NCBI RefSeq assembly: GCF_003704095.1
Contig: NW_020845440.1
Coordinates: 1-61,021, forward strand
Direction of reading: 5' to 3'
DNA: 61,021 nucleotides
From: Pocillopora damicornis
Lineage: Eukaryota
The notes beneath the pieces are model-generated. The model worked only from the letters and a program-made list of their open reading frames with translations. It did no database searches and was not told the DNA's origin. Below are positions 2,052-54,844 of this stretch, in pieces. The position numbers and the translations under genes were made by a program. Positions within the stretch are counted from its first letter, which is position 1. Each line of letters begins with the position of its first letter.

Positions 2052-2139
2052 CTGAAGAAAAAGATGAATAATTCTTAATACCTATCAAGAGTCATTGTAT
2101 TAATATATTCATAGTAAGTAAGGTTAAAAAAAAAAATAC

Positions 2140-2372
2140 TATGTAAGGTTAAGTCTGTACTCAAACCAAGTGGCCAACCCAGCTGCAGCTTATCCAGGTT
2201 TCCTTGGCATGAAGTGATTAGGAGCATCACTACTCCCTCCTGGATGCAATGCTAGTCCATCAAATGCATTTCCTTAGACTTACCCCACTATTCACCAAAA
2301 CCCATTCACACTCCTGGGGTAGAAAGCAGCACTGTAAGAGTGAAGTGTTTTGTCCAAGAATACAACACATTC
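2140..2372 (-). mobile_element. SINE-like interspersed repeat (head end runs into gap)
   Basis: Motifs gcttatccaggtttccttggcatgaag, ctggatgcaatgctagtccatc and gtgaagtgttttgtccaagaatacaacaca resemble the reverse complement of a common anthozoan SINE body (recognised from memory). Confidence 0.55.
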
Positions 2373-2472
2373 NNNNNNNNNNNNNNNNNNNNNNNNNNNN
2401 NNNNNNNNNNNNNNNNNNNNNNNNNNNNNNNNNNNNNNNNNNNNNNNNNNNNNNNNNNNNNNNNNNNNNNNN
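2373..2472. other. assembly gap (100 N, probably unsized)
   Basis: Run of exactly 100 N. Confidence 1.
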
Positions 2473-2511
2473 TCAAGTTTATTATTGTGTATTACAAAAC
2501 TTAGAACTTAC

Positions 2512-5500
2512 TGGTGTCTTTGCAAATGGTCTGGCCATGACAAAGAAGATCCAATAGAACCACGAGGTATGAGACAATGAAGTGTAAATCAAGTTCCCAG
2601 GATGTACAGCATTACATGTCACTCCTTTTGGTTTCAAGCGACGATTCAGTTCCATGGAAAAGAGCAAGTTACAGAGTTTGGATTGATTATATGCCACAAT
2701 GGACCAGTATTTATCTTTAGAAAGGGGTAGCTCTGACAAAGGTAACTTTGTAGAGTAGGTTAGGTCAGGAAACCTAAAGAAGGAGAAAAGACTTAATTGA
2801 TAACTTATCATCCAAATAAACTCAAAATACATCTTTTGTTTCAGAGAAAAAAAATTAATTTTTCTCAAAAGTTTTTGTTGTTTTTTTTTTACCAAGTTGA
2901 ACCCAGATTGCATTATTTATTTTCCACATTCAAAAATCAAATGATCAAATATCAAGATTCTCCTTAATTTTTACTTTCTCTACAGATGTGGAGTTCCAAA
3001 GCTTTGCACTTCTTAATTAATGTTGCCAGGATTTATCAGCAAAAAGTTATCAGTATAATATGAAACAATAACACAGTACTGCTACAATACTTGAAATTAG
3101 CTGACCTTTCTCGTTATTTTCTTATCTCTCTCAAAATTACCATTCAGTGTTTTCTACAGTACAGGTATATTACTTTTTGGAGCTGGCCCTTCCAAATTGG
3201 AAACTGAGGGACACAAAAACAACAGAGTCATTACGGCTAACTTACACTGCACAAAAGCCCAAACTGTGATTTGGTGAAATGAACACAGATTTCTCTCACC
3301 TGTGAGACTCTGAAGACAAAACTACAACTCTGGCAGGAGATGATGAGCAAAGAATATCTTCAATCAACTTCACAAGGTAGAAATGGCCAAGATGATTGAC
3401 ACCAAAAGTGCTCTCAATTCCATCCTCTGTCTTGCTCCATGATAAACCAAATACAGCAGCATTACAAATAAGAATGTGAAGAGGACTGGAAAATCACAAA
3501 TTTGAGAAATAAAATTATACATTTAGAATTACCAACTTGAAGAAGAAACTGCAAAATTTTAAGAGAAATTTGGCAAATGAATGAAAGATAAAAAGCTGTT
3601 TAGGTACATGTGATTTGTGAATTTTTCTAAAAATTAATGCATGAAACAGGATAAGGACTCCTCCTTTGCTTTTCTTAATCAAGTTAACTAGTTTACACTT
3701 TGTGTGCACTTTTTGCATTTTCAAATTCTTACTCAGTGTTTGAAAATTGCACACAGCACATTCCTTTCTTTAAAATATTGCCTTCTGCCAAAATGGTTAA
3801 ATAATTGATTTAGAGTGGGTTTCACTCACAGTTTCCGCCCTCTAAATTCTTCTGCAAAGTTTTTGATACTTGTAAATGATGCCAGGTCTAGCAACATAGC
3901 TTCCACGTAAGCCTCAGGGGTCTACAGCATTTGAGGTAGTAAGAAAATAAAACTAAATTTTAAAACTAGGAAAGTTTGCTGAATGTACTGGTTTTAACTC
4001 CCCACATGCTTGATATAACTTAATAACAAAACTTATCAGAAATTCTGAAAATACATCTGCATTAATGTACATATAAAATTAAATATTGAAAGTACAGTAG
4101 GAATGACCATTGTACTTTTTGATCAAGAACAGGAGATGTAGATTGTAAGAACATGCATGTTTTATTGCCAAGCAAGAAGAACAAAACTAAACTAAGTCAC
4201 ACCACAAGAGCATAATGATTCACCCTTTTTGTATGCAGTGCCCTGGGTACTAATAATATGATGACTGCTGGCTTAAAATGGAGCCTACTGACAATTTGAA
4301 TTTATTTTAGTACTGGAAATATCTAAGAGTATAGTAAATAAACAGTAAAATATTCATAGGAAAGAAATTAACAAGAGTAAACATTTCAGTTAATGACCTG
4401 TACTTGTCTGATCATAGCTGCTGCCCTGTTTGCTTTGTTCATGTTCCTACAAGCTAAGATCACATGAGCTCCGTGAAGTGCCAGTGCCTTGGCAGTCTCA
4501 AAACCTAATAATAAGTGTTGGAAATTCAATTAACAACAAATAAAAAACGAACTCATGATAAAAAAAAAACAACAACAACAAACAAAAAAGATTTCATTAG
4601 TTTAATCCTTTAACTCCCATAAGAGACCAAGACAGAATTTCTCCTTAAAATATCAATACAATATCAAGAAGACAAGTGACGAGGACAAAGAAAGATATAA
4701 ATTAGGGGATTGTTAGTTGATCCAATACCAAATACTCCAAACTAATATTGCAATATTTATATGGCAGACAGTAAAGAGAATTACTAATGAGATCTTGGGA
4801 GTTTAAGGGTTAAGAGGAGCAAAATTTTAAAATAGGATAAAAATCAATTGAATACTGCCTCACTACCTGGGTAGGACTTAACCTTTTGACTCCCAGAAGT
4901 GATTAATATGTTACTTCTCCCCATAGCATCCATACATTATCCAGCAAACAGGTGGTGAGATTACTCAAACTTATCAGGTACACGATATTATCTAGATTGA
5001 ACACCAAATTCTTGTTACCAATTTACAATGAAATGTGTAGCAGCTGGAGGAGAGAATTAACAATCAGATCTTGGGAGTTAAAGGGTTAATCATTACTTCA
5101 TGTAGCTACAGTTTTTGTTGGCTTAAAAACATGGATGAGATCAAACAAAGGAATGTTTTAAACCAGGTAAGAAGAGAGGGCATTGAGATGTAATGATCCA
5201 ACTAGTACATGCTTAAGATAAATCAAAGGACAATTATAGTTAATTTCAACATGTAGAAAGATGGCCATTGAAGAGAGGTTTGGTGTGATAATAGTAATCT
5301 GAGAGCGAAAGAAACGATGCTTGTTGCAGATAGCTGGCCTTCAGGAAAGGTTCAGTTTTATTTTAAAATGGTTCCTGAACACAATGTGTTAAATGTGCTA
5401 ACCTATGCCACTATTGGCTCCTGTCACAATGGCAACCTTTCCACTCAAGTCCTCTCCATTTAACACATGCATGGCTGTAGAGTGACTATCCAACTTTTTT

Positions 5501-6946
5501 GAATTTTTTTTACTTTTGGTGAAGTTCAGGGCTATTCTTGGGTCAGCATAAGTGGTTACTCTATTCACAGAACTGTTAAAAGATTGTACCAATCAATCAG
5601 TGGAAACTAAATTATCTTTAAGAATGGATCCTACCATAACACAAGATGAGAACTTGGATATATGTCAGCTCTCCCACTACGACAAGAAGTCTTTAGGATA
5701 CCAAAAAAATCTCCAGATCAACACCTTGTTAAATTTTCCATAAAATAGTAAATCTTGGAATATGTTTGCATGTAAAAGTGAAATCAAGGGATATTTCATC
5801 TGTACCAAAAAATTGTTACCAGTGACAGATTTTCTTCTTAGGGATGATTGTTTCAAAAGAATTTTTTGGGGGACTTAATCCAGACATGTGCATCTACATG
5901 ACGAGTGACTTCCAGTTTATGGTCAGAGATTGCAACAAAGCAGTCATTTCTAATTTCAAGTTTTTAAAAATAAAATTGGGTAATGGTTCAAACAGCTCTA
6001 AATACTTAACATTTCCAGAGGATAGTATCTCTGTGATATGATTTCAAAGAGATTAAATTACTCACTCAAAAAAGAAAACACTCCCTTTACTGTCATACAA
6101 TTGTTGCCAGCCTTGTGGAAGCTCTACAAAAATAAATGAAAAAAATGGTAATCTATTTGTAAGCCCTATCAGAGCATCAAAATCTGATCAGGAAATCTCC
6201 ATTTCCATTTCTCAACATTCCTTTGTAAACCGATTAGAAGAGTTTTTGGGTATGGAGATAACACCTTGCAGAAAAACTGGCAATTCTCGTTACCTTTCTG
6301 AGTGCTCTATTGACATTTCAAGAAGAAATTACATTTTATACGCTTTTAAGGTTGAAAGGTTTGACATAATTAACAATTTAATTTGTAAATCATGTAATTT
6401 GAAATACCTCCACAGACTTTGTATCTTTTTCCCGACGTTGGATGTTCCCACTGAGTTGATTTTGTCAAATGACTATAAAAATTAAATTTTTATTAAGAAT
6501 AAGGTAAGCAAATGTTTAAATTGTCACAAATCAATTGAGCGAGACCAACAATAAAACGTCCAATATCATTGTTTACATTAAGAAAGAATTAAAAGCGAGT
6601 TTGTAGGACGTTATGTTCGACAAAAATTTATACAGAAAAGGAAAAATGTACCTTATGAATTAACATAAATATCTTTTTCTCAAAAACCCTCTAATTTATA
6701 ACGATCACAACTCAGTTCCTATACTGGAACCTGCATCCGTAAGCCGGACAAAATGTTTTGCAACAGATCCTTTCATAAAACTAGGTTGAAATCACGAATT
6801 AAGCTACGGGAAAAGACCCACTTCGCATAATAGATCCTTCCATCGTCCATTGTTCTTATTTCCCATCCAGGCGGCAAAAAGTGTTCCTCTGGGTTTTTAA
6901 ACTCGCTGGTTTCTTCAAACACCAACCCGCCATCCTTGGCAGCCAT
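2512..6946 (-). CDS. WWOX: WW domain-containing oxidoreductase, exons 1-8
   Basis: GT-AG exons: 6946-6822, 6472-6408, 6123-6066, 5572-5403, 4504-4398, 3921-3830, 3485-3300, 2773-2512. They encode WW1 ([30 protein letters not shown]), WW2 ([19 protein letters not shown]...TTYADPR), and an SDR with [25 protein letters not shown], the catalytic YNQSK and VHPG. Confidence 0.97.
4602..4813. mobile_element. TTAA-flanked MITE, subfamily A
   Basis: Ends ttaa-tcctttaactccca ... tgggagtttaaggg-ttaa. The body matches the copy at 55952-56163. Confidence 0.85.
4878..5089. mobile_element. TTAA-flanked MITE, subfamily B
   Basis: Ends ttaa-ccttttgactccca ... tgggagttaaaggg-ttaa. The body is similar to the reverse complement of 55209-55419. 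Confidence 0.85.
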
Positions 6947-9759
6947 TTTGTACCTTCGGCCGACAGGGGACTGGGTCGGCCCTGAAGCAATACGGACAAC
7001 CCACGGCCGCAGGGGGTGGGGGGAGGAGGGGGAAGTGATAGGACGTGGTAAATAGGGTAAAGTACGTCAAAAAAGAAAAAAAGCGAAAAAAAAAATCACA
7101 GGAACAACAATGAAGAAACAGTGGGAAAGATTGTTATTATCAAAGTCTGAACATACATTGAGCTCTGTCCTTTTTAAGAGGTATGTATTAAACATTCATT
7201 GATACTTTTAAAGAACTTCCCCCCTAATTTAACCATTGTCAGCACCCCTAAAGTTGAGTTTCATTCCACCCACCAGGTCGAAAGATGGAATTACCCTGTG
7301 ATGAGGCTGTAGAAGCTGGCTGTCTCATTTTAAGGGTGCAAATTGAAGAAACAGATGGAGTAAAGGGAAAGTTTTTTTTAGTCCCTATTCTTCATTCTTT
7401 TGAGGTCATCTGAGGCTTGAGTCATTAGATCACTTTATCTTTGCAGTTTGATTCATACTAAACAACTCCAGTTACACAATGTGACTCTTTTCTTCATATG
7501 AAATTCCCTTCTTGGGGTACAATTTCTCAATACATCCTTCTTTCAAGGTTAAAAACTTACACCCAAAAGTACCCTTTCCTTTGAGTTTGAGACAACAAAA
7601 CTTGATGGTTTAATCAGTGGAAAGGGAGGAAAGATACAAAGGAACAGAAGCCACAGTTTAAAAAGAAAGGGACAAATGACACTGGACTTGAGGGAAAAAT
7701 AATGAAACTACATGTAAAATTCCAATGTTCAGTCTGTTTAATACAACCTTACAACCAAAGTACATAACTGTACATGGTGAAAATTTAATAACCCTTCTGC
7801 TGGCTGTTAAGTAAATGACACTTTAACCTTAGAGAAAGTAATAAAATTAAATTGAAATGTAAAATTGTTAAAAACTAAAAGCGAAGCAAAAATGGAATAT
7901 TTACCTTATGGACTAAATTTTCTTAAATACAATGGTAAGAACGCTGACAGGGTTCTTACTAAAACAAATAAAACCTGCTATGCATGTTACTTAAGTCCAT
8001 CTTACAGTTTGCAGAAAATGATATGTTCCATGAGAACATTTTCTACAAACCCAAAATAACTCATTCACTCCAGCAGACAGTCTGTGACCAATAAGCAATT
8101 TTTCCAATATAAGTTCAGTTTTAAACTAAGAATTGATGAGAAAGACCAGGGAATATTGTTTGATATCACAAAAAATTATCATGGCTAAACTCATACAAAA
8201 TGTATGGCCGACAGTGCAGAGAATTGATATTTGATGCTTGGTATTGGGAGTAAAGTTTTGAGACACCAGCATAATTTTCTCAACAATCACCAACAACACA
8301 ATAAAATTCACAACATTTGCAAACAGATCTAAGTATACTAATTTACATAATTAGCACCTTTTAAGGTAAAGCATTTCTGCACTGACCTAGAGTAACCTTG
8401 GAACAGTACCAGCCTAGTGGTTATAGCATACCACATATGTTTCTTTGAAATGCCTTTCACACCTAAATATCCATGCTGATATAATGAATGAAAATTGCCT
8501 TAACTTGCTAAGCAACACAATGTGCTTCACAAGAATGACATTTTGTTAACCTTTCAACCCTCATGGGAGTGCCAATTTGTTGATGGTGATATTTTTGCTG
8601 TCAACACTTATTTAAGCAAACATATGGAAACACCAAAAATTGAACAGTGACCTTGTTGTCAGAAATAAGGCAATCTGTAGTTGAATGGAACAACTACAGG
8701 TTACCAGTAACATACTATCTGCTCAAAGTGCACTTATCTGCTGACAAAATCTAGCATTTACACATCAACAGCTATGTGCCCTAAATATTACCTTCTGCAA
8801 GTTACTTTAGATTAAACAGAATTAATGTGCCTCCAAACCAGCTAGCTTAGCCTGCAATATCAAACCCTTGGTTTTTGCTTTTCAGTTGGTCTGTGGAACA
8901 AAACACCTCTAATAGAAACTATTTGCAACAGCAAAATATTGCTGATCATGCCGCTTGGATTTCTAGAGTTCTGTTTGTAAGAAGCTGTCAGTAAGCAAAC
9001 AATTAACCCATTCAGAGTCATCTTGGTCGAGAGGTTGTTTGCAACTCTACACATTCAAAGTCTGAACATAGTGAAGGACACTTGTATAAACTAACTGTGA
9101 TGCTGGTAGACAAATATAATCACACAGTTCATATACAATAATAACCACTCAATTATTAAATAGAAGATAAACTGTTACTTTCAACAAGGCAAACTTCAGT
9201 CTTTTGCCATAGCACTTATTTTATATCCAAAGATGATAGAAACACCAAAACAACTTCATGAACCCAAAATTGATAACGTATGCATGAATGCAATACTGAA
9301 TCAACAGTTAAGAATAACTACATGTACAGTACCACTCATATATATGTTAACTAGCAGATGCATGTCATACACTCAGGCACAGAACATCAGATGCGCACAC
9401 ACATTTTTTTTATATTTCTAAAAACTTCCCCTCCATTAAATCTGTTATTACCCTCTAGTCCAAAGAGTGAACAAATACATGTGTGAATCTTACACTTAAA
9501 ATAAACTTGTTAAAAAACTTACTAATGTTTCTGTACAAAATGCGAGTATGATAAAGAACCATGGTTATATTACAAGTGTATGATGGTAAAATAAGTGGGC
9601 AGTATTCATGCATATGTACATATGGTCTTTGCAAGAAACATTTAAGATTGTATCATGATGGTTAGCTATAATAATAATAATAATAACAATAATTAACACC
9701 TTTCCCTCCCTCTCTTTAATAACCAAGAAAAGTAATCCTCAACACTGACTTGATTTCAC

Positions 9760-12700
9760 TTAGGAAATGAGAATTGGAGAATTCCTAGAAAAGAGGAGAT
9801 AAACAGCGTTACAAATATTTGTAATTTCTGTGATGATTACTACAATATCTTCAATACAACTACTGTTATCAATATTATCATCATTGTCTCTGATGAAATG
9901 CACAGACCACACATCCTTTACTGTTCTTTACATGTGAATTAGACTTTTTAACAAGTGTCATTCCATACCGGCTAAAAGAGGACTCCTCAAATGCCATATC
10001 CATGGGTTCCATTTCAAACTGTTCATCTTCATCAGACTGGTATTGAGCAATGGACCTGTTGTAAATTTCAACTTTGATCAGTTCTTTATGAGTGATGAGA
10101 AGAATAACAATTCTCACAATAGAGAAACAATTAGGAGGATGTGTATTTTCAAGTTTCCAGTAGCTCACTTTGTTTACTCCAATACTCTAGCAAAAGCATT
10201 GTTTTTCCTTTCTCTTTAGAGGATTGCTGGTCTCAAAAGAATTTCAAGGAAAGTTTAGGCACAGTCTTGGAAGGTAAAGAGATTATCTCGAGATACGAGG
10301 TTGCTTCAGACTGTTTGGATAAAGTTCTACTTCATATCTGTGATAGAAACTATTCTGTTCCCACATTTTCCTGAATTAAAACAGGGGACTTCATAATAAC
10401 AAGACAAATATGGGGTTTCAGTAGATTATGGTCCTCAGCCTCTAAACAGTACTGTAGAACTTCACTAAAGATTTTCCTCTACAAAATGTGCTTCCTACCT
10501 TGTTGCTCTACATGTAAAGAACAATATTCTCTTCATTTTCTTGTTGTAGAAGAAATAGTTGAAAGACCACAGGCTTCCTTCCTCACCATAAGGGTCTGAG
10601 TCAAGATCAGGATTGTAGCTAGACATAAATAAAAAAAATATTTCCAAAATTACAAACAACTCAAATAACTTGACTTCAGTAATAATGTATTTGGCACCTC
10701 TTTGGTAATTGGGAATGCCTAAACAAATTGGATAGGTAATATGTTGAACAAAAGTTTGTTTATTAGTTAGCTAGTAAGTGGCAAATCAACTGGCCAATTA
10801 CAAAAAAAAACAGTATGGTGACTGAACTTAAGACTGCTGTGAAACAAATGGCTGTGAGAGAAAGTGTGAAAAGTTAGAAACTGCATGAACCTCTAAATTT
10901 TAAATCCAGCACACTTTCACCACCTACATTTTGTACCTACCATAAAAATACATTCAAGTTCAGTAGTCATGAACCCTTACATCTAACTAAATATTTTGGC
11001 ATCAAGTGGTAAATCATAATATAAATATGAACTTTACTTATAATCCATGCAATTACCTGAATATGTCACACTCCACCAGATTAATCTCTTCATCAATTGC
11101 ACTCCACAATCCTGCCCTGAGAGCAACATATGTCTCACCATTAATGGCAGACAGATTCCCATTGATTGCATCTACCACCAATTGAAGGTTTGGTTCACGC
11201 GAGAACTCATGAGACTTCACATTACTGAAATCATAATCTGGGTTAAATGATGCATTCAGGGTGGAAATCAAATAGAACAACATCTTGCGACTGATTGTGT
11301 CACACAGCACAGCTTCCTCTTGACTTCCTGTGCTCAGCCTTCTCTGCCGTGCACTAGTAAGGACTGCAGGGTAATTGCTGTTGGTAGGTGATATGCTTGC
11401 TGAGTGTGTAGTTTGTGGTGGTGACAAGGCCTGAAGTTCATGAGGGGCACATCCTTCATTCAGACTCTTATATAGTTTTTTGTCACTACCAGCCATCTTA
11501 CAAGAGTAACTTTCAATTCTAGGAATAAAATACATTCATAAATATCATATCCTATAGTATATGACTTCACACAATAAAGGACACAGGCCTTTAGCATTGC
11601 CTTCCATTCAATTTGACAAACAGTCTTACTGGAACTCTGACAGTTCCCTTACATCATCAACCATTGTCAGATTTGTGGATTCCTTCCTGGTTATGTCTAA
11701 AGGTGTCAACCTGTTACTGTGGGGTCCTGCCACCAAGACCATTTAAATAGAGGATGGATTGTCTAATTTTAATGAGGGTGGGTTAACAGTCCAAACCCAA
11801 CCCCCAGCCTGGAGCACCAGGGGATCACACTTTGTCTGGTCTCTACCCTTCGACCTGTTCGGCATGGGTGACCCTACCAGGAGTTCAAGACTCCAGCCGA
11901 CATAGCTCTAGGGGTTACTGAGACACACAAACCATCCCACCGCGATAAGGTGGTGACCCTTGGGATGGAGTTACAAAATCTGGTTGTCAAAAGTACAAGT
12001 GATCCTGCAGTTACTGTAGTTTAGTTAGTGATACAGATACAATGATGTCTAAGAGTGTTGTTGACAAACTGAAAAAGATTTCTCTATACTGACAAGCAGC
12101 ATGCCTGTCAGTTGCTGATTTGTAGGTACAGTCGCTTAACCCTCTGACGCCTAAGAGTGACTATCACCTAATTTTCTCCACATGAAATTACCTCTAAATC
12201 AAACTGAAGGGTCTAACGTCATACTAAATGATCACCAACTAAACCTCTTGACTAATAAACAAATTCTCCTTATCAGTGCCTTACAAAATTTACAGAGAAA
12301 AGTATTGAAAATAAGTATACTGATGATTCTAGGCCATTAGTCTCTAACATGAAAAATCTGTATTTGTGTTGGAAGTGACAAACCGACATAGGTATACTAA
12401 AAACCAACAGAATTAGCAATTGACAGGTAGTAAGAGCCACAATTGTGTAGCGCAGAGATTATTTTTGATTCAGAGTTTGGTAGATTTTTGGGATAGTCCT
12501 TGATCAGCATGTTAAATAAATTTAGGTGGAAAGCCTCTCAAAATGCAGCATTAAATTGATTCTCCTCAATCAAATGAAAATCATCACATGCAAATCAAAA
12601 GTCAATTCAAGTTCCCAGCCAAAATTTTATTAGTCTCGAGCCAATAAAATTTGTTTCTAAAAAGAACTTAAAAATTGCAATTCCGCAAGAAAACTCAGGC

Positions 12701-13231
12701 GCTCCAAAACTTTCTTTCTCTAAGAGCTATGTCAGCTGAAGTCTTGAAGGAAATTTTCGTGTACCAGTATCTACAGCCTCAGATAGTTAAGGTTGAAATA
12801 ACACTAAAAATACAGAGAGAGTGGACAAATATTACACCATAAAGTGATCCCCGACACAAGAGTTAGTGAATGACTGTCAGCTGATATGGAATATGCTGAG
12901 CCTCGCAAATTCATTACGACCTTCAAAGTTTATTTTTTCTGGATCAGATAATTTCGCTGTTCATGGCTAATGGCTTATCGACACTGAGTAAACTTATGAC
13001 AATCTCAAATGTGTAGGGTAAGCTTGGAAATACAAATATGGTTCAAGCGAAGAATTACCGAACGGAATTAGATACAAAAAATTTAAATACATTTCAAAAC
13101 AGAGATAAACAACAAACTGTAGACGTATTCATTATCTAGATACCTTACCTGCCATCAATTTGGCTGTCTCCCTTGTCCGTGGAAATGGCTGCACTTAGAG
13201 TGTCCAAACGGGCGTTTTCCAAGAGCTTCAT
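9760..13231 (-). CDS. MAF1: repressor of RNA polymerase III transcription MAF1
   Basis: Exons 13231-13149 ([10 protein letters not shown]...IDGR), 11518-11057 ([17 protein letters not shown]...[16 protein letters not shown]...LWSAIDEEI), 10618-10499 ([34 protein letters not shown]), 10055-9969 (acidic tail) and probably 9784-9760 (NSPILIS*). The last exon is less certain; read-through to TGA at 9881 is the alternative. Confidence 0.96.
11560..11965 (-). mobile_element. internally deleted RTE-clade non-LTR retrotransposon remnant in MAF1 intron 1
   Basis: GC-rich island. The minus strand reads ccaccttatcgcggtgg...gagctatgtcggc...ctcctggtagggtcacccatgccgaacaggtcgaagggtag...ctccaggctgggggttggg, resembling recalled RTE 5' leaders. 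It ends tggaaggcaatgctaaaggcctgtgtcc...tgaag, like RTE 3' ends. No RT ORF remains. Confidence 0.6.
12136..12326. mobile_element. TTAA MITE subfamily C, truncated
   Basis: Starts ttaa-ccctctgacgcctaagagtgac and is similar to 29035-29248. The right terminal repeat is missing. Confidence 0.65.
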
Positions 13232-42552: not shown

Positions 42553-43521
42553 TCAGCCGAAAAACTTCATCCACTGAACCAAAATGTCTGCATTTGCGGT
42601 GTATTTGTCTTCCTTCGATTCGTCGGAATCCAGCTCTTGGAGTTCTTCGTTTACAAGATATTCATTAGCGTTAACAGCAGTTGTGGCGCTTCCCTTTGCA
42701 GCTTCACTCTGTCTGTTCAAACATGGTAGACTACTTCGTCTATTGTAGATTTTTTCGCTGGGAGGGAATGATAAAGGGCGGCTATTTGATACCTTAGACT
42801 GAGCTTCTTTTATCTTGTGCTGCGTCGAGTGAAAAGGCACAGGGACGAGCGAAGACTTTCGCCGTCTCACAGGTTGGCCAGTCTGTTCATTATCAATTCT
42901 CGTTTTGGATTTGACACAGTCTGATAAGTTTTTCGTTTTGAGGCATGTAATTGACTCCTTACCTGTCGATTTACCTCGCCGTTCTCTAGAAACCCCTGAT
43001 CGATCCACGTTTTCTCTCGTGTAACACATCGGATCAGAATGACGTCGAGGCGTTACTACATCCGCAAGACAGCTCTCGCGAACCGAATACCTTGCCTCCG
43101 TGCTTTTAACCGAGGTTCTTTTGCAAAAGCCATTTTCACTTTCACTGCTGTCACTCGAAAGTAGCGATAAGCGATGAATAATATGCTGCGTCGCGATTCC
43201 ACCTGGCTCCGAATATCTGCGCTTACAAGGGCTCAATGCATTTGAGCAGCGCTTAATTCTTAAATATGAGCCGTCCCTGTAGATCGCTGGTAAGGACATT
43301 GTCCGAGGTCGACGGTAAAAGATTGGGGCGTCGTTTGCTGTGTTTTCTTCAACGTTAGTTGCGTAGGTGGACGGCGGGCACTCGTCGCCAGTTTCGGAAA
43401 TTGTGTTCAAATGCGTCGATTGTACGGAAAGCCGTCTTTCTGTTAGTCGCGGCTGAAAAACATTTCTTTCATGGCAGTTTAGTGGGTACGAAGTTTTTCC
43501 TCCAAAAATACTCTCCACCAT
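42553..43521 (-). CDS. uncharacterised Ser/Arg-rich, probably disordered protein (322 aa)
   Basis: Single 969-nt ORF, accATGG start context, raised GC, many RRxS motifs, and an acidic patch before a hydrophobic tail (DILVQWMKFFG). Confidence 0.8.
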   Translation of the reverse strand: MVESIFGGKTSYPLNCHERNVFQPRLTERRLSVQSTHLNTISETGDECPPSTYATNVEENTANDAPIFYRRPRTMSLPAIYRDGSYLRIKRCSNALSPCKRRYSEPGGIATQHIIHRLSLLSSDSSESENGFCKRTSVKSTEARYSVRESCLADVVTPRRHSDPMCYTRENVDRSGVSRERRGKSTGKESITCLKTKNLSDCVKSKTRIDNEQTGQPVRRRKSSLVPVPFHSTQHKIKEAQSKVSNSRPLSFPPSEKIYNRRSSLPCLNRQSEAAKGSATTAVNANEYLVNEELQELDSDESKEDKYTANADILVQWMKFFG

Positions 43522-46500
43522 GGTAAATTCAGTTGATCTGTGGTGTAACCAAAATCAGTGAAACTTTGATCTTAAAACATCTGCGACTGCTTCGAAAATC
43601 CGGCCGATCTGATTGGATTGTCATTTCAAATCTCGTGTAAATCTCTCAAGTTCAAAACCCACCTTATTTCTCTTGTAGTAGCTACGAAGGTGAACTCTGT
43701 TTTCCAAAACCACAAGGTGAAAATAACTCCAGCCTTCGTGAAAAAGTCTGAGACGTCCCACTTACACCGCAAAATCTTTCCTTGCGGTCTTATCTCGAAT
43801 CAAAAGATTCTTATAAATATTAACTATGCGGTTAGAATGCACATAAAATTAATAACAGCTAGCAAAAGTGATCTTTTTTTAGAACAGAACCAGTCAACCG
43901 TACTTCACTTGTCAAACGTGTTTTGAGTATGCGGCTATCTTGCCCGTATCTAGTCGCGTACTTAATGATACGTAAACACATTTGCACCAGTAATGACTTG
44001 GTTTTCAATGATTTTAGCCCTCATGGATGACCTTGTCATGGTAAAATTACCGTTTTGAAGATTCTTTCCTCACAACGAGAAATTTCTTGATTAAAAGTAC
44101 CATTTTTACTCGCACCTTATGTGTTTATCTTTTGCGAACGCCAGGTGATATAGAAACTAATGAATACTGCTAACTACACGTAACATTTTTCAATGTTTAC
44201 TTGGTTTTTGCTTGAAAAAAAACTAGAACTAATTTAGCGATAATCTTTGTTAGTGGCGGCGAATACTTGTCCTTTCAGTTTTTCCGGTTTGGCTTCAATT
44301 AACTGTGTCGATCCAAGAGATTATCCAGACTTGTTTTGCGGCAGTTTCGTTAACCAGCTCTCCTATTAAATGAGCTCCGAGACGTGAAAACATGCAAATA
44401 ACATTACGGCTAAATTTTTGGGGAAAATTGCTTTTTATCCGAGAAAATATAACAAGACTAACCTTGTTTTTAAATCGAACAGTTGACTCTCATTGTCGTA
44501 AAAATTTTATTTCAGTTGACCAAGATGAAAGGCCTTCAACGAAAACTAAGAAATAACAACTGAGAGAACCACTTAGACATTCAGTCGTCAAAGATGCACG
44601 AGTTTTTGTTTTATGGCAATCAAGCTGTATTCTAATATCTCTCACTTCTAAAAATATCTCTGAACAAATTAAAGTAGACGACTTGAATTTTTTTTATTCA
44701 TCAAGCATTCAATTCTATGATTGTAGCTCTCGGCTGTTTCAAACACATCTTCCTATAATCTTAACCTTCGTTACTTTCGTTATACGTCCTTCTTATACTG
44801 AATAATAAAAAATTACAGCTTACAAGTTTTTAAAGTTTTAAATTGCATCGTGACCTTGGCGAGTTAAATTTGTTCAGAAAATGAATACATTAGCTTCAAT
44901 ATTTGAAGAAGAGATTTTGGCTGGAGCAGTTTTGAACGATTTGTGTTCAAAGACACTTTTCACTTTTCTTATTAAAGACAAACCTACGAAGAACTTTCAG
45001 GGCGCCCAGTTCGTTATGAACTTAAACGATTGAAACATCGTCGAAACCTTGTAGAACGTTCTAGCCGCGGTTGCGATAACAATCTCAATTAAAATTCGTC
45101 GAGCAAATATCCATTCAGTTGACGAAGCTTATTTTAGATTGAAGCGTCACCAATGATTTTAATCATGTCCCCCGCTGACCATAAGGACCAGAAACACTGA
45201 GGGCAAGTTTCACTTTGAAGGTCAAACTCCTATAGCTTAAAGGCCTGGGCTGCTACAAGATGTTTTCTTCTAACGCTTGCTTTAACCCGCAAACAGAAAT
45301 CTTTACATTAACTTAAGAACAGAGTTGTAGTTAACACACGTGTCCTGATTATGCTTGTAAGATGTTGGAAAGTGGCTCACTGGAATGCCAAAATGTTGCT
45401 AAAAAATTGCTGCTCAAAAAAATTTCAAAAGCTGCTGCCGAAATTCTTGATATTTTGATAATTTAATTCAATAACTGCTAACATCCGCCAAGAAAAATAA
45501 CTTGAAAATTAGCTTTAAGGAGTTGCTCGCAATATGGGCGACATTTAGGGATAATGGTTCATTTGACGTCCTGCCGAGCGTTATTTCAGCCGATTACCGT
45601 TATAATATTAGATTAACATCGCAAAAGGTCTGCGAAACGTTCTCTGGTGACAGTTAATGCGTTAATTTTTTAAAAGATCGTCGAATTTTTCGAGCTTGAT
45701 ATATGTTCTAAACCTACATTTTGCTCAAAAGGCAAAAGGTTGCTCGAAGTTGCTAAAACCGCAAAAAGTTGCTTAAAAGCAAGCCGGTATAATTAGGACA
45801 GCCCTAATAGTTACTGCCTTCTCTTATCTTGATGGTGTTAGTTTATTGCGGCTATGTAATGCCAGGAGATCGGCTTTGAGGAGATGCTTTGGGATACTGA
45901 TGAGACCCTCTCTGAACTGTTTATAGATGGCGAAATAAGGGTGTTTCTGCCTTTTTCCGGCCGATTCTTAATTAATAGTGTTGAATTTACTAAAATCTTT
46001 CGTTTTTCACGAGAATTTGTTGAAATCTCGTGAGAACTAAATCGGCCTAAGACTTGGCACCTTTGTCAAGAATGAGGCGATCGCCGCATTCTTGGACCCA
46101 TATTTTCCTGAATCTGGTTTGAAACGGTTAACTATAAAATCCTACGGACTTAGTAAGCTCCACCATGCTGAATTGAGTTTCAGAGGTGTTTCATTGTTTG
46201 TATGAAAAATGGAAAAAATTACTGACGTCGCTTGGAATCGACCAAGAAAGCAATTGGAAACGGTCTATGTCTAAAGCCTTATATGAAAGAGTTATTTTCC
46301 AAAGTGGGGTAAATATCCACCACTTTCGCGGACACTTGGATGAATAATTGTTTTGTATATACCACACAGATACCCAAAAATTACCTTATTTCTCTCAATG
46401 TACCGAAAAATAGTCGGAGATTAAATGCTTGACGCGCGGTTTTGTCTCTTCGGCTGCTCGGAGGTGAATAGTACTTGCCATTCACATCTCAACTAGCCAA

Positions 46501-48932
46501 TCAGCGCACAAGTGTGATATGTACAAAATGATGTATTGAGATATTCAACTTAATTTCCTACAATAATGTTTTGCAAATAAATGAAATAAACCGTATTGTA
46601 ACCCTAGTGTCGATTATAACAAATAATGAAGCGATTCTCACGAGTAAATTGCAATCAAAGAAATTGCAGTAAAGAAGCCTGAAAAAAGTTGGGCCTCTTT
46701 TTTGCAATTTCTTTAACTGCAGCTCAACTGTGCTGAGAAGATCGGTTCGTCATCAATCAAAACTGTGACAAATTTTGTTTTTAAAGAAAGGTGGGTCAAG
46801 AAAATAATATGTGATCACACGAGGATTTTAATCTTAAGCCTTCATAATTTACCTTTCGTTGGCCGAAATATAACTTGTAGTTACGTTTAACAAAAACAGG
46901 TGGCCGTTTTCACGTTTCTTGACGCAAAATTCGTCGTTCTCATAACCGACGATTGTAAATTAAAAGTATATTTTTTTGTCCTGGCAAATATGATGTTGTC
47001 ACTAGTATTCTACTCAAAAGAAAGAAGTGGAAATTGTCAAATGAACGAAACAAGCTCCAAATACAACACCAGCATACTTTTAAGTGAAAAAGACTGTTTA
47101 AAATTAGAAATTTCCCTCTCAAGTGTTGACGTCTGAACGGGGGCTTGTGATAATGCCCGTTTATGATTTTAGAGAATATACAATGGGTAAGTGATAGCCG
47201 GCTACATGTACGTATTCCACATTTTCTCCCACAGGATGTTAGTGGAAATTAATTTCAGTTGTCTGTCTGAGTTTGCAGGTTAGTGCTTTTCCATCTTTTT
47301 ATTTCTGGAACTGTAAGAATCCCTTTCGATTCTTTAATTGATAATGTCAGTAGAGGTTTAGGTGGCCCTCGATTTAAACGTGACCCTTCAAATTTCGTTT
47401 ATTTGTGACTCAGCAAAAAATGCTCACGCTCTACTTCTTAATCCCATCAAATTTACAAGGGCTCACTTGTACACGAAGATAGAAATGTTGACTTAATCAG
47501 AATGTGGTTATATTTTTAGTTCTTACGATTTTTACGTTCAGTAGCCCACTTCCCATTTGCCTTTGTTTAGGTAATCTTACTGATTTGTTTTCGTGCTAGT
47601 CCAAAGGCTTAAAGAATCGAGTTTAGTCTGCTAGAACTTTTGTTCACAATGTACAGGATTATCTAGGGAAATTTTCCGATTTTGCAAGTTCTTATTTAGG
47701 TTATTCTACTCACATCTCTTGACGAACGGTGGACTCTCTTTGCGAAATGGTCAGCTCTCTTACATCCAATGTGATACTCGGATGTGTGACCGACGTAGTG
47801 CGTTGACTTAAGTAAGTTTAAGAAAGAAAAGAGTATCCTTGGTACACTTTCTTATTAGACGTAAATCAGTACAGCGAAGAGTTAAAATTTGGGAGTAACA
47901 TTTGTTTGTCTAGTATGATAAGGACGTCTCGATAATCTCTTTTTTCGTCTCGCTTCAGATTACCAGTATATTGGTAGACCAACGCACAAAAATTTCACTG
48001 AAGCGGATTATATATACCAGTTGTGTACTCAGTATTATTTTTTTTTATGGCTGTTACTATTTTCGACGATAACCTAGTTTCGTCTGCTAGACAATAATAC
48101 CAGATATTGTTTTGACCACGTGAACAAATGAAAACAAAATACATCCATATTGAGTTAAAATCGGAGATTACATTTTGGAGCTAGAGAAACCAACACAGGC
48201 TCCTCACTAACAACCACAAAAGAAAAATAATGATAATAATGATATAATCTGCAGGAAACAGGTTTAGTTGTAGAATAATCTGTACAAACGTGTGGAGGAT
48301 GCTGTCGTGGCCTTCGTTACCTCTCTTAAAGATCCTGTCTACCAGAATGAATAATTTTTCTCTCAAGGAATCTATAGGAGGTAAATTTCTAGGGGCGAGG
48401 GAGGAGAGGGGGGGTTTGCATTTTAACGGGTTGTGTTGTGTATTCATGTATTTACTACTCACACTTGAAAATTATTAGGTCACTTGATGAGGGTTATTGA
48501 TCCCCGGGAGTCACAGTGAAAGCAACACCAAATAAAAGCACTTTTGGTTAAATCTTGCTAATGTGGCAAAATATATAGATTTAACAAATCTTCACCATAC
48601 TGCGATTCTGGCTGACATGAATCGTGTACTAAAACGTAATTCTTAGAATAATTTTAAAACTGGAAATCTCCTGCTTCGTAGTCCAGGTGAGTTCAACCTC
48701 TCGTCACAACCACAGAAAAATGCGTTGCTTTAAGGCAACTGGGAAGCTCCCTGAATTCTTCAGCTTCCCCTCTTTAGGTTTGTGGATGAGTTTTACCATT
48801 ATTACACTTATTAAGCTGAGTTTACAAGTTCTAGCCCCTCAAATGACCATTTCCGAAGACTTCATCTATGCCCACGAGATCTCAGTGGTATGATGAACTG
48901 TCGATCTACCTTCTCTCAGTGGAAATAACACT

Positions 48933-51900
48933 CTACGGCAATAAATCCCGGATGTTCTCTCCCCGATCAATTCTCTTGTCAATTTCAACTAGTAAAGTCA
49001 CACTGTTGATAACTTGTTGAAGAATATCAACCTGCAAAATTATATTTAAAACAATTAGAAATAATCATCATTTCAATTATTGAACACCGGTGTTTTATAT
49101 ACTATACTACCTTCAAATTGAGTTTTGATGACGTCGTTTGCCTAACACTTGAACTCTTCTATGTGATTATGATATCACTTCTCACAATATCAATGCATCA
49201 TCGAGATAAATAGCGAAGACGTAAGACATTCATTAAGTAGATAGGGTGCCATGATTGCTTCAAATTCTCCGCCCGTAAAGGAAATAAACAACTACCAAAA
49301 ATGAAGTTGTACAATTAAATCTTGAAACTAAAGCTTCGCAATGGGCCTTGCTTACCATAGAGTCTCTGTGGCTTAGTGGTGGAGCATCGGAGTGCGGAAT
49401 CTGTAGGTCTGAGGTTCGATACCTCATGGGGATTCAGAATTTTTTCTTTGTCCCACGCTCGTGACAGGACAGAAAACAAATTTCTCTATTTCTTTACCGA
49501 GCATAAAAACTTGCAATCTCTCTTATTCTATTAATAAAAGCGTTATCTTGGTCTAAAAAGCGAAAATGTGAGATCCATCGCCAAAAGCGACCTAGAAAAT
49601 TTAAAAATTGGTACTGACATATCTCAATATCTCTCCTGAATATACTTTTCACACAACTGATTGATTCATCTTATGGTTCTATAAATAATTACCTCCGTCA
49701 GCTGCATTTTGTATTTATTTCGTATGCAGAACACGTCTTGAGCTTGTGGATCTACTGAAAATGGGTAACAAGAGTTAGCTCTATTTGTACTGCGGACACT
49801 ATCGAGTGGAAAGAACTGTGCGCTGTGCGGTTATACCCCGGGTTGGTGAAAGTCTACCAGACATGAAGCCCGAGGAAGTAACAGAACACAATAGAGAAGA
49901 GGGTTGGAAGAAGCAGGAACTTTCAAGAATTCAGATGTCACTGCTTTTGGCGCATTTTAATCTATCAATTTTAAAAGTGGAGAACGCGGAACGCATAGAA
50001 TCCTTTTTGTCTTTCATCTCAACTAACCACCACTATTACGAAGAGCAAAAAAAATATATCACCTCCGGCTTTACTGATAAGCAACAATTGAGATCGCCTA
50101 AGTACCAAATGCAACCTATTCCACTGTAACATTACTCAGTTCAGCTCTGATACAGAATCGGAAATAAAAATTATTCAACCTTTCAATTTAAATTGTTCTA
50201 TTGGTTTTGCTGTTACACGCTGTGACTGAGCGAAGCGGGGTTTGCCCCTCCACGGGGTTTTCCCCAACCGCCCCATAAATGGTAGTCCAGATTGCCGGTA
50301 ATACCTCCCTAAGTCGCACTTTACTGACCAGTGCTTTAATCACTCTGAGCTTCCTGATCAGCGCTCACGTTGAGTGGTTCATTTTCCTTTGAGAATCTCC
50401 AGCTCACCTGCCTCGTCTAGCTTCACTGGGAGTACATGTATAATGCGCTCAAATCTTGGATCCTTGAAAAATTTAGAGGTAAAGCACTAATATCAACAGT
50501 GTTACTTGCTAACACAAAATGGCCAACTCTTACAAATAGCATAACGGAACTTTATACTTGAATGAGTCTGTTTAATTCGACCGACTAAGATACGGGAAAT
50601 TCAGTGAAGCAATGAGCACAGGGTATTCCACAGCTTATGTCGTCTAACACTTCCCACCAAATGCCATTACTCTCCCACCTTGTGACGATGATTAGTTTGT
50701 AGAAATTAAACTTACCAACCTTGCAGAGTTTTGACAGCCGAACTTCTACTTCCACCTCAAGTCCGGTGCCGATGTTACGTGGCGAGCTTGTCAAATATCC
50801 ATATTTTGAGCTCCACATGAACTTCTTTTCATTTCGTTTTAAACCTTCCTCTATACTTGAGAGTATTTCGCTGTATCGCCTGAATGCCCTTTGTATATCC
50901 CCGCCAGTTTGAGTTATGACAACCTTCAAATGATCCTCGAAATTTATGAATATCTGACATTGTCTGTTCTCAGCTAACCACACGAACCTTCCATGAGGCC
51001 AATCGCGTGACAGCTGGGGCGGCAGTGAAACAAAGCTTGATCCATACTCTTCCATCGCAGAATTACTGTTTTGCCATGACACCGAGAGAAAAGAGTCCCC
51101 GATGTTTTCTGTGAAGACAAAGTAGTATATCTCATGTGTGATTTCTAAGAAATACTGACTTGCGAAATTTCCTTCAGAGCTCGAGTGAGCGAAACCAAAC
51201 GTCGTGATTATGATGAGTCAGGAAAATAAAAAAATAGAAAAACAAAAAGTAACGAAGATAGTTACAGATGGAGGAGATGAACACAGATTGCAAACGACTA
51301 TCTTTCTTCCATCAAATTTAGCGAAGAAAAACTAATGAAACGGAAAGTGACTGACTAAAACCCTCCGGCCGCTTTCTTCTCCGAGCAGTTAAAAACTCGA
51401 CTTAAAGTAATCACCTCAGCCAATCAAAACAAATGGGAATATTACAAGAAGGCAATGAGAACACAAAGTGAATTTATTTAATGCATACTGAGATTTACTC
51501 ACGAAAAAAAAAAGACCCGCTTAAATTTTTTACGAAATACACAACCAACCAATCAGAAGAGCGAACAACTGTGAAAATATATCGTTCGTCCTATCAGAGA
51601 CAAGAACGATAGTACTTTACAGTGGAGGGCAACAAGCACGCAGCTTTCTGTTAAAAAAAAATGGATGAAGACGTGCCAAGATTTGCTCTACATGAAGGAA
51701 CAAAAGATGACTCCATAGGTGAGCAAGAAACTGAAAGAACACCAGAGCAGAGACAGATAGAGACGTAAGACATTTTCAGTTATTTTAAAACCGAGGTTGT
51801 CCCATTTTCTTTCCAAGTTTTCATACTTCATAAATGTAAGCATTTGCAAATCCGCGATGCTATTCATAAATTGAAAAATTGAATTTCAAAAATATAAATT

Positions 51901-53279
51901 ATCGTTGTCTCTCTTTTAAAAGTATAGTACGTCAGTCGGCAAATTTGTGTGTAAACAAATAACAACATAAACAACACAGACTGAATATCGAGCCACGTTG
52001 CAGATTTAGCGGTGTTTATTATTGAAGAAATGTAAGATGGTTTCCGTGTTTACATAGCCTGATGTAAACACGTGGAAGGTTGGGAGAACACGAGATAAGC
52101 GTAGGAAACCACGACGCGAAGCGGAGTGGTTTCCAGCTTATCGAGTGCATGTTCTCCCAACCTCCCAAGTGTTTACATCAGGCTATGTAAACACGGAAAC
52201 CATTTTACATTTCTTTTATAAAATAACTAATGAAAGAGGAACGAAAACCGTGTTTACATACACTCATGTAAGATGGTTTTATGGCCAATTAGAGCGCGCG
52301 TACTATTTGAATTATTTTATTAAAAAAATTGCTCTTGCTTCCAATCTTTGAAATGTGATGGTCAGTAAGAGAAAATCTCACTATATATGAAATAAAAACA
52401 GCATTCTATGGAAAGTGCTTAAACGTTTTTTATTCACAATTTGCGATGCTTCAGAAACCTTACTCGTTCGCGGCGTTCACTCGTTCATTTTTTTGACCCA
52501 TCGCAATTCGTGAATAAAAATCGATCGTGCGCACCTTCCATAGAATAATCTTTATACAAACAATCTGTCCAAAGCGCGGGAAAACGTGGGTCGCGATAAG
52601 TTGTTCATTTTGCCACTTCTTGGTCGAGAGGGTAGGGTGAAGTTTCTGGATCAATGGCGGAGCAAACAAAACCACAACTTCCCTAAACCTCTTACTTACC
52701 CCAAATAGACTCCACTATCGGGTGACTCACATCTAATAGTTCTGTTGCTCGGCTGGCGGGAACCATTCGGTATCCTTCTATGTTTCTTCTACCAGTCAAT
52801 CTGCAGCATAGCACGTTTGATCCATACAGCTTTCCACCTCTGATTTGCTCCCAATCCAAGTTAATTTCTGAATTGAAATTCTGATCCACCTCATGTAGCT
52901 CTCTAATGACAGGGTCCATGAGTTTATTAAAAACATCATAACATTCTTCATCTCCCGCTAGCAGCCCCGCGGGGTTTCCAGCGAGTGAGCTGGGGCCAAC
53001 TGAACCTAGACCCGACTCGATCAGTTGCTCTATATCATAATTTTTAGTTGTGCCCCTGTCTTTCAACTTGGAGAATAAGTCTGGTGTAAGATACTTTGCC
53101 ATAATAGTTATGTTGTTTGTGAGGTCCGGAAAGCTACTCATGCGGCGCTTTTTCCTTGGATAGTTTGGATGGTGACTGCTTAGAGTAAAGAAAGCTGTCA
53201 CACTTACTGCTACACAAACCCCAATCACAGCATAAGGATTGCCTAAAAGATCTCTAAACTTTTGAAGAGTAAAAGCCAT
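48933..53279 (-). CDS. creatine-kinase-like (ATP:guanido phosphotransferase fold) protein with N-terminal hydrophobic segment; likely pseudoenzyme
   Basis: GT-AG exons 53279-52700, 51108-50720, 50462-50408, 49754-49693 and 49031-48933 join in frame (394 aa). CK-like motifs: FPDL...MAKYLTP, AGDEECYDVF, RDWPHGR, NFEDHL, FMW...GYLTSSPRNIGTGL, and the C-terminus TEVDILQQVINSVTLLVEIDKRIDRGENIRDLLP. Confidence 0.92.
49360..49535 (+). mobile_element. tRNA-derived SINE-like repeat (intron of the CK-like gene)
   Basis: A-box-like tggcttagtgg and B-box-like ggttcgatacc, followed by a non-tRNA body shared with 24115-24212. Confidence 0.8.
52025..52215. repeat. long imperfect palindrome (foldback/MITE-like core)
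   Basis: aagaaatgtaagatggtttccgtgtttacatagcctgatgtaaacac... pairs with ...gtgtttacatcaggctatgtaaacacggaaaccattttacatttctt. The loop is near cgacgcgaagcgg. Confidence 0.92.
52403..52546. repeat. second imperfect palindrome (MITE-like)
   Basis: attctatggaaagtgc...ttttattcacaatttgcgatg pairs with catcgcaattcgtgaataaaaa...gcaccttccatagaat. Confidence 0.8.
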
Positions 53280-54844
53280 TATTTAGTTTCCTATATCGTC
53301 TACTAAAATCGATCGTTTGAAGCTCGACACTCAAGACGTCACAATTAGGGCATGACATCACGTGTGACGAAACAAAATTACATCCGTCATAATTGCTCAG
53401 TATGAAATACACTTTCATCTCGGTTTTTCGCAGTTAGAGTCATGTCTGATTTAGTTTCACATATTAATTCATAAAAAGGTCCCAAATGCATCGTAATTTT
53501 TGCGTAAAATCACAACGAAGTCTATTGGATTAAAGGGGTGTACGTTAACTAATCACATGCTCTCTTGACTAATACGCGCGCCTGGTGTTGGAATAAACTG
53601 GGTCCTAATTAGAACAGTGTTAGCCATGTTAGTTCAGGCTGGTGTCCTCGCACATCTCGCTTATCAGAGCTAGCTATGTGACTGTCTCGATCTCCGGACA
53701 ATAGGATACATTCACGGAAGTAATGGTGAGTGTAATTCTTGTAGATATTTATTACAGTGACCCGGAGGTCAAGAGATTAGAGTGAATACAAGTGATAAAG
53801 AAACTGTTTACTCTTCCATTTTTGCAACTTAATTTAAGTGAGTCCTAGATTAAGCTAGTAAGATATACTGTGGGTTACGCAAATATTTAAAATGTTTTTA
53901 TATGTATGGTTCCTAATTCAATCATGGGACCGAGGCGACTGATGCTCACCATAAACAAAGAAACAAAGTTCAAGGAGACACAGAAATGTAGCAAGAATAA
54001 CAGTGTCGCACTCGGCTGCAGCCCGTGTACCACTTTCTTTTTCCTACCGCACTTTGAAGTCATCTTTGATTCAAAACCGAATAGACGCACGGAAATATGG
54101 ATTGTATTTGTGAAATAGAGCTTAAATAGTGGTCTTTCGTTAGTGTAAGGCCAAAAAATGATATGGCCTGTGTCGCCCCTTGAACATTTGTAGTGAAAAA
54201 CAGTATTAAAAAATCACTGTATGAGGACCATGTGAGATGGAACACGCAAGGTTGAAGAGAGATGCATACCGCATACCGTTCTAGAAAAGGAAGAAAAAGA
54301 AAGAGTGGTAGTCATATGACTAAGTACTTTGTGACTGAGGTTTGCAGAGGCTAGATGTGAAAATGTTTGGCTCTTGCTGGTCATGACATATTTACCTCAC
54401 TTTGCTCAGTTAATTGGCATGCCATGAAAGGGAGCAAAATATTACCTTGTGTGGCCCTTCCATTAAGTTGAGAAAACTTCTACATCCCCCTCCCCCATGG
54501 GCTTTTAAAATTTTGATATTAGTTCGTTCAGATTCCTGTCTCCTGGCTCACTTAAGTGCGGGATTTCATTTGTAGAAGGCACAACTAGTGATGGTGACTT
54601 TCTTGTTGAACTTTTTTCTTCTAGGCCATCTATTTTCTTAAGTGAAATTTTTACCTTTAATTACACCACTATTACTAAAGATAAAACACGTTTATTTGGC
54701 TGGAAAGACTTGACAGTTTTAGTTCAAATTCCCCACCCCACCAGGATAAAATTCAAATTTCCACCTTAGGCATGGACAAGAGTCAATGCCCATGGGGGGA
54801 GGTGAAGTTGAAGCTTAGAAATTGACTGCCGCATATGTGATTCA

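Follow-up and report, generated by a model that had tools for sequence, protein, structure and literature searches.

The window analysed here, the whole of a 61,021-nucleotide stretch of Pocillopora damicornis DNA, carries on its minus strand (53279..48933) a gene whose product is, by homology, a member of the ATP:guanido phosphotransferase superfamily within the creatine kinase (CK) lineage. Phosphagen kinases are textbook enzymes with a near-invariant active site, and pseudo-enzymes are a well-known kind of protein. We consider it very likely that this CK-like gene encodes a conserved and expressed protein that does not work as a phosphagen kinase. The best explanation, which we regard as probable from the sequence comparisons below, is a catalytically dead member of the CK lineage that descends from a mitochondrial-type CK and is tethered to a membrane.

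Three-frame translation together with inspection of the splice sites resolves the gene into five exons with a coding length of 1185 nt, equal to 394 codons plus the stop, and GT..AG borders are present at all four introns. Contigs from the poly(A) metatranscriptome runs X1 and X2 were placed on positions 48400–53700, and all four predicted junctions are present in them (raw positions 51108/52700, 50461/50719 (+1), 49754/50408 and 49029/49691 (+2)), the contig depth over the exons being far above that over most intron sequence. The five exons and the unbroken 394-amino-acid open reading frame (ORF) proposed in a preliminary description of this DNA are thus borne out by the reading frames, the GT-AG introns and the RNA junctions. 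The gene is made up of the following parts:

Exon 1, 52700..53279, minus strand: the start codon and N-terminal tail, followed by the hydrophobic segment and the basic cluster, then all of the N-terminal phosphagen-kinase domain and the first part of the C-domain; 193 codons plus 1 nt, with a phase 1 donor (GGG/gtaagt); based on the ORF and frames, PF02807, PDB alignments to CK and arginine kinase (AK), and RNA junction 51108/52700.
Exon 2, 50720..51108, minus strand: core of the catalytic-domain fold, CK residues about 176–304, bearing F228, F231, E232, K236, S283, E292 and E296; based on PF00217, the ungapped alignment to 2crk_A 203–304, the family residue table and RNA junctions.
Exon 3, 50408..50462, minus strand: DPRFERIIHVLPVKLDEA plus 1 nt, standing where the QKRGTGG loop would be, with R320 replaced by D; based on the frames, orthologue matches of 75–100%, and RNA junctions 50462/50720 and 49754/50408.
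Exon 4, 49693..49754, minus strand: (V)DPQAQDVFCIRNKYKMQLTE, with D335C and R341K; tandem CAG/TAG acceptor with an alternative start at 49751.
Exon 5, 48933..49031, minus strand: C-terminal helix (CK 347–378) and stop codon (48935..48933); RNA junction 49031/49693.
3′ untranslated region, 48718..48932 as a minimum extent, minus strand: record 7 of the RNA contigs of X2 is unbroken over 48718–49033, and depth is high over 48577–48930.
5′ untranslated region, 53280..53308 as a minimum extent, minus strand: record 5 of the RNA contigs of X1 spans 53019–53308.

The acceptor of exon 4 is of the NAGNAG type (49751–49754), and both 49754 and 49751, each joined to 50408, are found in the RNA contigs. 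Use of the acceptor 3 nt downstream (49751) drops one valine and gives a 393-amino-acid isoform beside the 394-amino-acid protein. The corresponding acceptor of one of the orthologues described below (L019) reads CAG/GTG, and hence that gene is unable to make this choice.

All searches and alignments were run exon by exon, and residues are numbered after rabbit muscle CK (2crk_A) by means of HMMER alignments to solved CKs. In Pfam, residues 55–126 of exon 1 match the N-terminal helical domain of the phosphagen kinases, PF02807 (3.8e-19, 69.3 bits against a cut-off of 25.7), and exon 2 matches their C-terminal catalytic-domain family, PF00217 (8.9e-27, 94.2 bits against a cut-off of 22.4). Both exons match solved creatine, lombricine, glycocyamine, taurocyamine and CK-lineage arginine kinases at 1e-19 to 1e-26, and a phmmer search aligned exon 5 with residues 346–377 of CK-B (E = 2.8e-4). 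Because the alignment of exon 2 to 2crk_A is ungapped over residues 203–304, the residue numbering is secure.

When compared in this way, the window gene carries the replacements R96L, R132T, W228F, E231F, R236K, C283S, S285R, R292E, H296E, D335C and R341K, and R320 has become D within a loop that is three residues shorter; R130, N230, E232, D233 and H234 are kept. Only R130 is left of the phosphate-binding arginines R130, R132, R236, R292 and R320, the others being T132, K236, E292 and D320. The NEED(H) motif reads FINFEDHLK, the CP(S/T) motif containing C283 reads SSPRN, and the DHFLF..PVSPLL stretch ahead of RDWP has turned into LSVSWQ..YG..LPPQLS. In the N-domain, the guanidino-specificity loop exceeds that of CK by two residues. 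In human ubiquitous mitochondrial CK (uMtCK, numbering 5 lower), the phosphates of ATP are bound by five arginines, E226 (=E231) is the Mg ligand and E227 (=E232) the catalytic base, and the R125A, R287A and R315A (=R320) variants retain 30%, 10% and 2% activity, respectively (PMC5133464). Since the Mg ligand, the reactive cysteine and all but one of the five arginines are lost, it is very unlikely, judging from these residues, that the window protein catalyses the phosphagen kinase reaction. The alignments to solved CKs confirmed every entry in the substitution list of the preliminary description, from which the retention of R130, E232, N230, D233 and H234 was absent.

Orthologues were sought with exon 2 as the query, both in an exhaustive HMMER search and in a word-based search, and the contigs of the matches were then inspected. 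The searches returned exon-sized ORF fragments that are 48–98% identical to the query; the word-based search gave four matches only, and the exhaustive HMMER search, whose listing was headed by multi-domain kinases, returned no full-length protein of the family. Complete orthologues are present in at least three other coral assemblies (L026, L019/L020 and L018) and partial ones in four more (L017, L016, L024 and L021), with the following amino acid identities to the window gene:

L026, Tara coral metagenome scaffold: all five exons, 92–100% per exon.
L019 / L020, an 832-kb contig and a Logan contig: all five exons, 60–85% per exon.
L018, a 2.6-Mb contig: all five exons, 45–75% per exon.
L017, metagenome scaffold: exons 1 and 2 (37% and 54%) and a weak match to exon 3.
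L016, JGI coral metagenome contig: exon 2, 59%.
L024 / L021, JGI and Logan contigs: exons 1 and 2 / exon 2, 32–51%.

L026, L019 and L018 keep every one of the five exons open, with splice sites at the same place and in the same phase as in the window gene. The surroundings of the gene are also shared, as the gene downstream of L019 (14653–16227) matches window positions 42553–44751 (43.2–44.7 kb) and a bZIP_Maf ORF adjoining L017 matches the window at 30.1–30.7 kb. Between the window and L019 this downstream neighbour reaches up to 84% amino acid identity in one exon, which is above the identity of the CK-like gene itself.

Comparison of the members separates positions that are fixed in the family from positions that vary. 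All eight members carry F228, F231 and K236, the family as a whole shares N230, D233, H234, R215 and the GTG motif without exception, and C335 and K341 recur in every member for which exon 4 is available. At position 96 only L, I or V occurs, and at position 216, a glycine in the enzymes, only F, V or I; position 283 is serine in six of the eight members, cysteine in L024 and aspartate in L021. Residue 232 may be E, L, I, Q or F, and L017 has M in place of R130. Five members carry E at position 292, one carries R and two carry H, positions 294 and 296 are freely variable (Q, D, M, R, K), and members differ by 0 to 10 residues in the length of the guanidino-specificity loop. As far as the alignments tell, the family-wide change is the loss of the phosphate and Mg ligands together with the placement of hydrophobic residues in the old pocket. 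The preliminary description had described the basic ATP-phosphate pocket as largely lost and partly reversed to acidic; the loss stands, while the acidic reversal is conserved only in part, given the variation at 292, 294 and 296, and the acidic EVEVEV patch is largely a feature of the window's genus. Because of this partial conservation, the accompanying suggestion of a binder of a cationic ligand is weakly founded. We discarded the EVEVEV patch as a family-wide binder of this kind, since 294 and 296 vary and three members have R or H at 292.

The same table of residues bears on whether the protein might still be an enzyme of altered substrate or chemistry, using another phosphoryl donor or acceptor or performing hydrolysis by means of R130, E232, D233, H234, K236 and K341, which we regard as quite improbable. 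Such an enzyme would have to operate with a position of the catalytic base that holds L, I, Q or F in orthologues, with M in place of R130 in L017 and with E, R or H at 292, and its Mg ligand E231 is Phe in all members. Purifying selection and conserved new residues do suit a new active site as well as a scaffold, and N230, D233, H234, R215 and the GTG motif do not vary; yet the old pocket contains no polar constellation that is kept family-wide, the 320s loop is shortened and the specificity loop varies by 0 to 10 residues. The bacterial protein-arginine kinase McsB does show that the fold is able to change its substrate class.

Selection on the gene was assessed by pairwise Nei–Gojobori counts of the ratio of non-synonymous to synonymous substitution rates (dN/dS) in pooled exon-by-exon alignments, with a Fisher test on the non-synonymous and synonymous proportions:

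Window gene against L026: dN/dS 0.24, from 19 synonymous and 17 non-synonymous differences, p 4e-5.
Window gene against L019: dN/dS 0.25, dS 0.74, p 2e-22.
Window gene against L018: dN/dS 0.18, dS 1.6 and thus near saturation, p 9e-34.
L019 against L018: dN/dS 0.22.

Purifying selection acts on the CK-like gene in several coral lineages. A recently inactivated gene that drifts towards a pseudogene and whose transcripts are noise would account for the many catalytic residues that are gone, for a dN/dS that is not very low and for the 14 non-synonymous differences in exon 1 from a relative that is 92–98% identical. It would not account for a reading frame that four lineages keep open through all five exons at dS values up to more than 1.5 with conserved splice sites, for replacement residues that are invariant between lineages only 32–54% identical, or for correctly spliced poly(A) RNA. 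Since dN/dS is significantly below 1 in all tested pairs, this reading is rejected, and we find it hardly credible. The preliminary description had associated decay with a dN/dS near 1 and no expression, and what was found are values of 0.18–0.25 and spliced poly(A) RNA. Its proposal of selection for a non-catalytic role is in turn supported by the expression, the exon structure, the dN/dS values and the invariant F228, F231 and K236.

The divergence between the window gene and L026 is uneven along its length: dS is 0.145 for exon 1 and 0.025 for exon 2, exons 3–5 give 0, and the nucleotide identity rises from 92% at the 5′ end to 98% at the 3′ end. Such a pattern suggests that diverged haplotypes or species have recombined.

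Two features encoded in exon 1 concern the location of the protein:

Codons 17–33 (AVIGVCVAVSVTAFFTL), 53181..53231, minus strand: a Gly/Ala/Val-rich hydrophobic segment, candidate membrane anchor or mitochondrial sorting signal.
Codons 42–46 (RKKRR), 53142..53156, minus strand: a basic cluster just ahead of the FPDL fold start.

The hydrophobic segment of the window protein has a Kyte–Doolittle mean of 2.36 over 17 residues. A short N-terminal tail, a hydrophobic segment at 17–33 (hydropathy 1.6–2.4), a basic cluster and the motif (F/Y)P(D/N)L are common to the orthologues, in which the basic clusters read RRRKR, WKKR and KKIRPR. The active mitochondrial-type paralogues of the same genome (C3794a/b) carry a hydrophobic segment at the same position (17–35), and in the HMMER alignment to 7u5i this N-terminal stretch aligns with the presequence of human uMtCK and its RKKRR with the ERRR.

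The segment might also direct the same dead protein elsewhere, namely as a signal-anchor of the endoplasmic reticulum (ER) and secretory route or of the mitochondrial outer membrane, with a CK-like domain that either is released in soluble form by a proprotein convertase cutting at the basic cluster (RKKRR, RRRKR, WKKR) or faces the cytosol. The 17-residue hydropathy of 2.0–2.4 lies within the transmembrane range, a charge of +4 to +5 follows the segment and the pattern R-x-K/R-R is conserved in three lineages, all of which would be in line with such a destination, yet the active mitochondrial-type paralogues have their segment at the very same position and the basic cluster aligns with the ERRR at the mature N-terminus of human uMtCK. 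The extra positive charge on the C-terminal flank of the segment moreover argues against a lumenal or extracellular domain, this argument on topology being based on the positive-inside rule. With a domain that is not lumenal or extracellular by this rule, a convertase would not reach a site of the RKKRR type. We consider these other destinations rather unlikely.

To place the gene among its relatives, the loci with PF00217 in the window's genome were compared:

C3794a and C3794b: two mitochondrial-type CKs.
C2813: a multi-domain CK.
C2178: a cytosolic-type CK.
C983: two CK-lineage AKs.
C1502: a divergent, intronless gene.
The window gene.
C694: a second degenerate gene.

Maximum-likelihood trees of the exon 2 and exon 1 regions recover the family as monophyletic on a long stem, with support of 100/99 and 100/98, respectively. 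In the exon 1 tree the members branch in the order L024, L017, L018, L019 and then the window gene with L026, which looks like a species ladder, and the AK-type genes form a starred clade to which the CK-like family does not belong. Introns 1 (phase 1), 2 (phase 0, after K304) and 3 (phase 1, codon 323) of the window gene are found at the same position and in the same phase in C3794a/b, relative to which the intron at 346/347 is extra. C694 shares introns 1 and 2 with the window gene, the AK-type gene reads through the site of intron 1, and C2813 and C1502 are without introns there. The N-terminus and the intron positions point to a mitochondrial-type CK as the ancestor.

Three of the other loci deserve a remark of their own. 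The second degenerate CK-like gene (L011 in C694, 55061–58489) also shows a hydrophobic stretch at its N-terminus, together with the replacements R132H, W228F, E231Q, E232D, R236Q, C283D and R292E. Among active genes it is closest to the mitochondrial-type CK C3794 (48–53% identity), and the tree places it near those genes; it may represent an independent loss of catalysis, and a joint clade with the window family is not rejected in the approximately unbiased (AU) test (p = 0.26). In L006 (C3794), the exon ending in ..HLAK has an apparent GC donor (AAG/GCAAGA) at the counterpart of intron 2 of the window gene. L003 (C1502, 93812–97456) is an intronless 394-amino-acid frame with WLNEGDHIR (Gly at 232) and CCPTNLGTGLRGGV, and it groups with the AK-type genes.

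Our model starts from a duplication of a mitochondrial-type CK gene that would have given rise to the CK-like gene. The gene has kept the two-domain fold, three intron positions and the N-terminal hydrophobic targeting or anchor segment. It has lost the Mg ligand E231, R132, R236 (to K), R292, R320, Cys283, a guanidino-specificity loop of fixed form and the DHFLF region, and purifying selection has maintained it in stony corals since. The N-terminal segment would hold the protein at a membrane, most likely a mitochondrial one on the side of the intermembrane space, like the active paralogues. Membrane bridging, organisation of contact sites and partnering with transporters have long been proposed as roles of mitochondrial CK. 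In the most economical model, the protein works without phosphotransfer and serves oligomers of mitochondrial-type CK and contact sites as a partner with a structural or regulatory function; alternatively, it might bind a ligand in a pocket remodelled by the hydrophobic L96, F216, F228 and F231. The specific mechanism involving mitochondrial partners is put forward only tentatively. Likewise, it is a possibility that we would not favour over its opposite that stony corals keep a membrane-tethered dead CK, derived from mitochondrial CK, whose task is that of a non-enzymatic subunit or organiser in the machinery of mitochondrial CK and contact sites, or else that of a sensor using a new hydrophobic pocket.

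Several observations weigh against a dead, membrane-tethered descendant of a mitochondrial-type CK. In both trees the family lies within a CK polytomy and a sister group is not singled out, and the AU test rejects none of the unions with mitochondrial-type CKs (p = 0.17), with AK-type genes (p = 0.15) or with C694 (p = 0.26). The C-terminus of the window protein ends like that of a cytosolic CK, without the long basic tail. A basic cluster behind a hydrophobic segment would also fit an outer-membrane or ER signal-anchor or a furin-type site. The retained R130, E232 (in this species), N230, D233, H234, K236 and K341 may leave room for residual or altered chemistry, and a dN/dS near 0.2 is looser than we would expect of an active CK. 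The expression evidence comes from one study only (runs X1–X4), and runs X5 and X8 from other studies contain mainly intronic repeats of the locus.

The introns of the gene hold further elements. In intron 4, a tRNA-like element on the plus strand (49362–49435; Rfam tRNA 34 bits, an odd 4-nt anticodon in ARAGORN) reaches an RNA contig depth of more than 1000 in all four runs with many different flanks and looks like a member of a tRNA-derived short interspersed nuclear element family. An inverted repeat in intron 1 (52019–52221) with 72-nt arms that are 93% complementary has a depth of 2000–13000 in all runs with varied internal deletions, and looks like a repeat of the miniature inverted-repeat transposable element type. 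Unspliced RNA contigs span intron 3 (49728–50437) at a depth below that of the exons, and a plus-strand ORF at 49785–50129 (114 amino acids) is 100% identical in L026; the RNA of intron 3 may reflect intron retention or an antisense transcript.

If the explanation offered here is true, the family would be the first pseudo-enzyme clade within the phosphagen kinase family. A dead, membrane-tethered paralogue under selection would part the structural roles of mitochondrial CK from its catalysis in a way that is testable in a natural protein. The gene also serves as a warning, as domain hits alone would miscount it as an active creatine kinase; since the arginine cluster, E231 and Cys283, which define a functional phosphagen kinase, are not preserved in it, the window protein should not be annotated as such.

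The statement of the preliminary description that no family like this has been described agrees with our literature searches, which found no description of a non-catalytic phosphagen kinase family, with one exception: a motif-less clade of Medusozoa (PMC13679545). This survey from 2026 reports, purely as an observation on jellyfish data sets, a basal 'clade 1' with phosphagen-kinase domains but without CK-binding motifs, for which its authors leave open divergence versus incomplete assembly (PMC13679545). Likened by description only, the two share their cnidarian origin, domains without the CK motifs and a basal or long-branch position, and possibly the dead CK is spread more widely among cnidarians, if the medusozoan clade is related.

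Among the characterized systems, mitochondrial CK (human uMtCK, PDB 7u5i/9b04; C3794) shares with the window protein the two-domain ATP:guanido phosphotransferase fold, the positions and phases of introns 1–3 and an N-terminal hydrophobic segment followed by a basic cluster and (F/Y)PDL, with an identity of 33–36% to C3794a in exons 1 and 2. It differs in that R132, R236, R292, R320, E231, C283 and the DHFLF region are replaced in the window protein, and in that the window gene has a shorter 320s loop, an extra intron at 346/347 and no long basic C-terminal tail. Cytosolic CKs (rabbit and human M- and B-CK; 2crk, 3b6r) provide the best single-domain PDB matches, and CK-B resembles the window protein in the C-terminal helix and the ..DLLP ending, but the catalytic losses set the window protein apart from these enzymes, which in turn are without an N-terminal hydrophobic extension. 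The CK-lineage AK of the sea anemone Anthopleura (4rf6), a cnidarian member of the lineage, has the top summed PDB score over both exons; unlike the window protein, this contiguous two-domain enzyme is active and has its full set of catalytic residues. McsB, finally, is a distant homologue of the catalytic fold that acts outside energy buffering, with PDB matches of 4e-9 to 6e-6. It is an active kinase with an architecture of its own, and since the similarity is far weaker than that to CKs, the window protein is no member of the McsB group.

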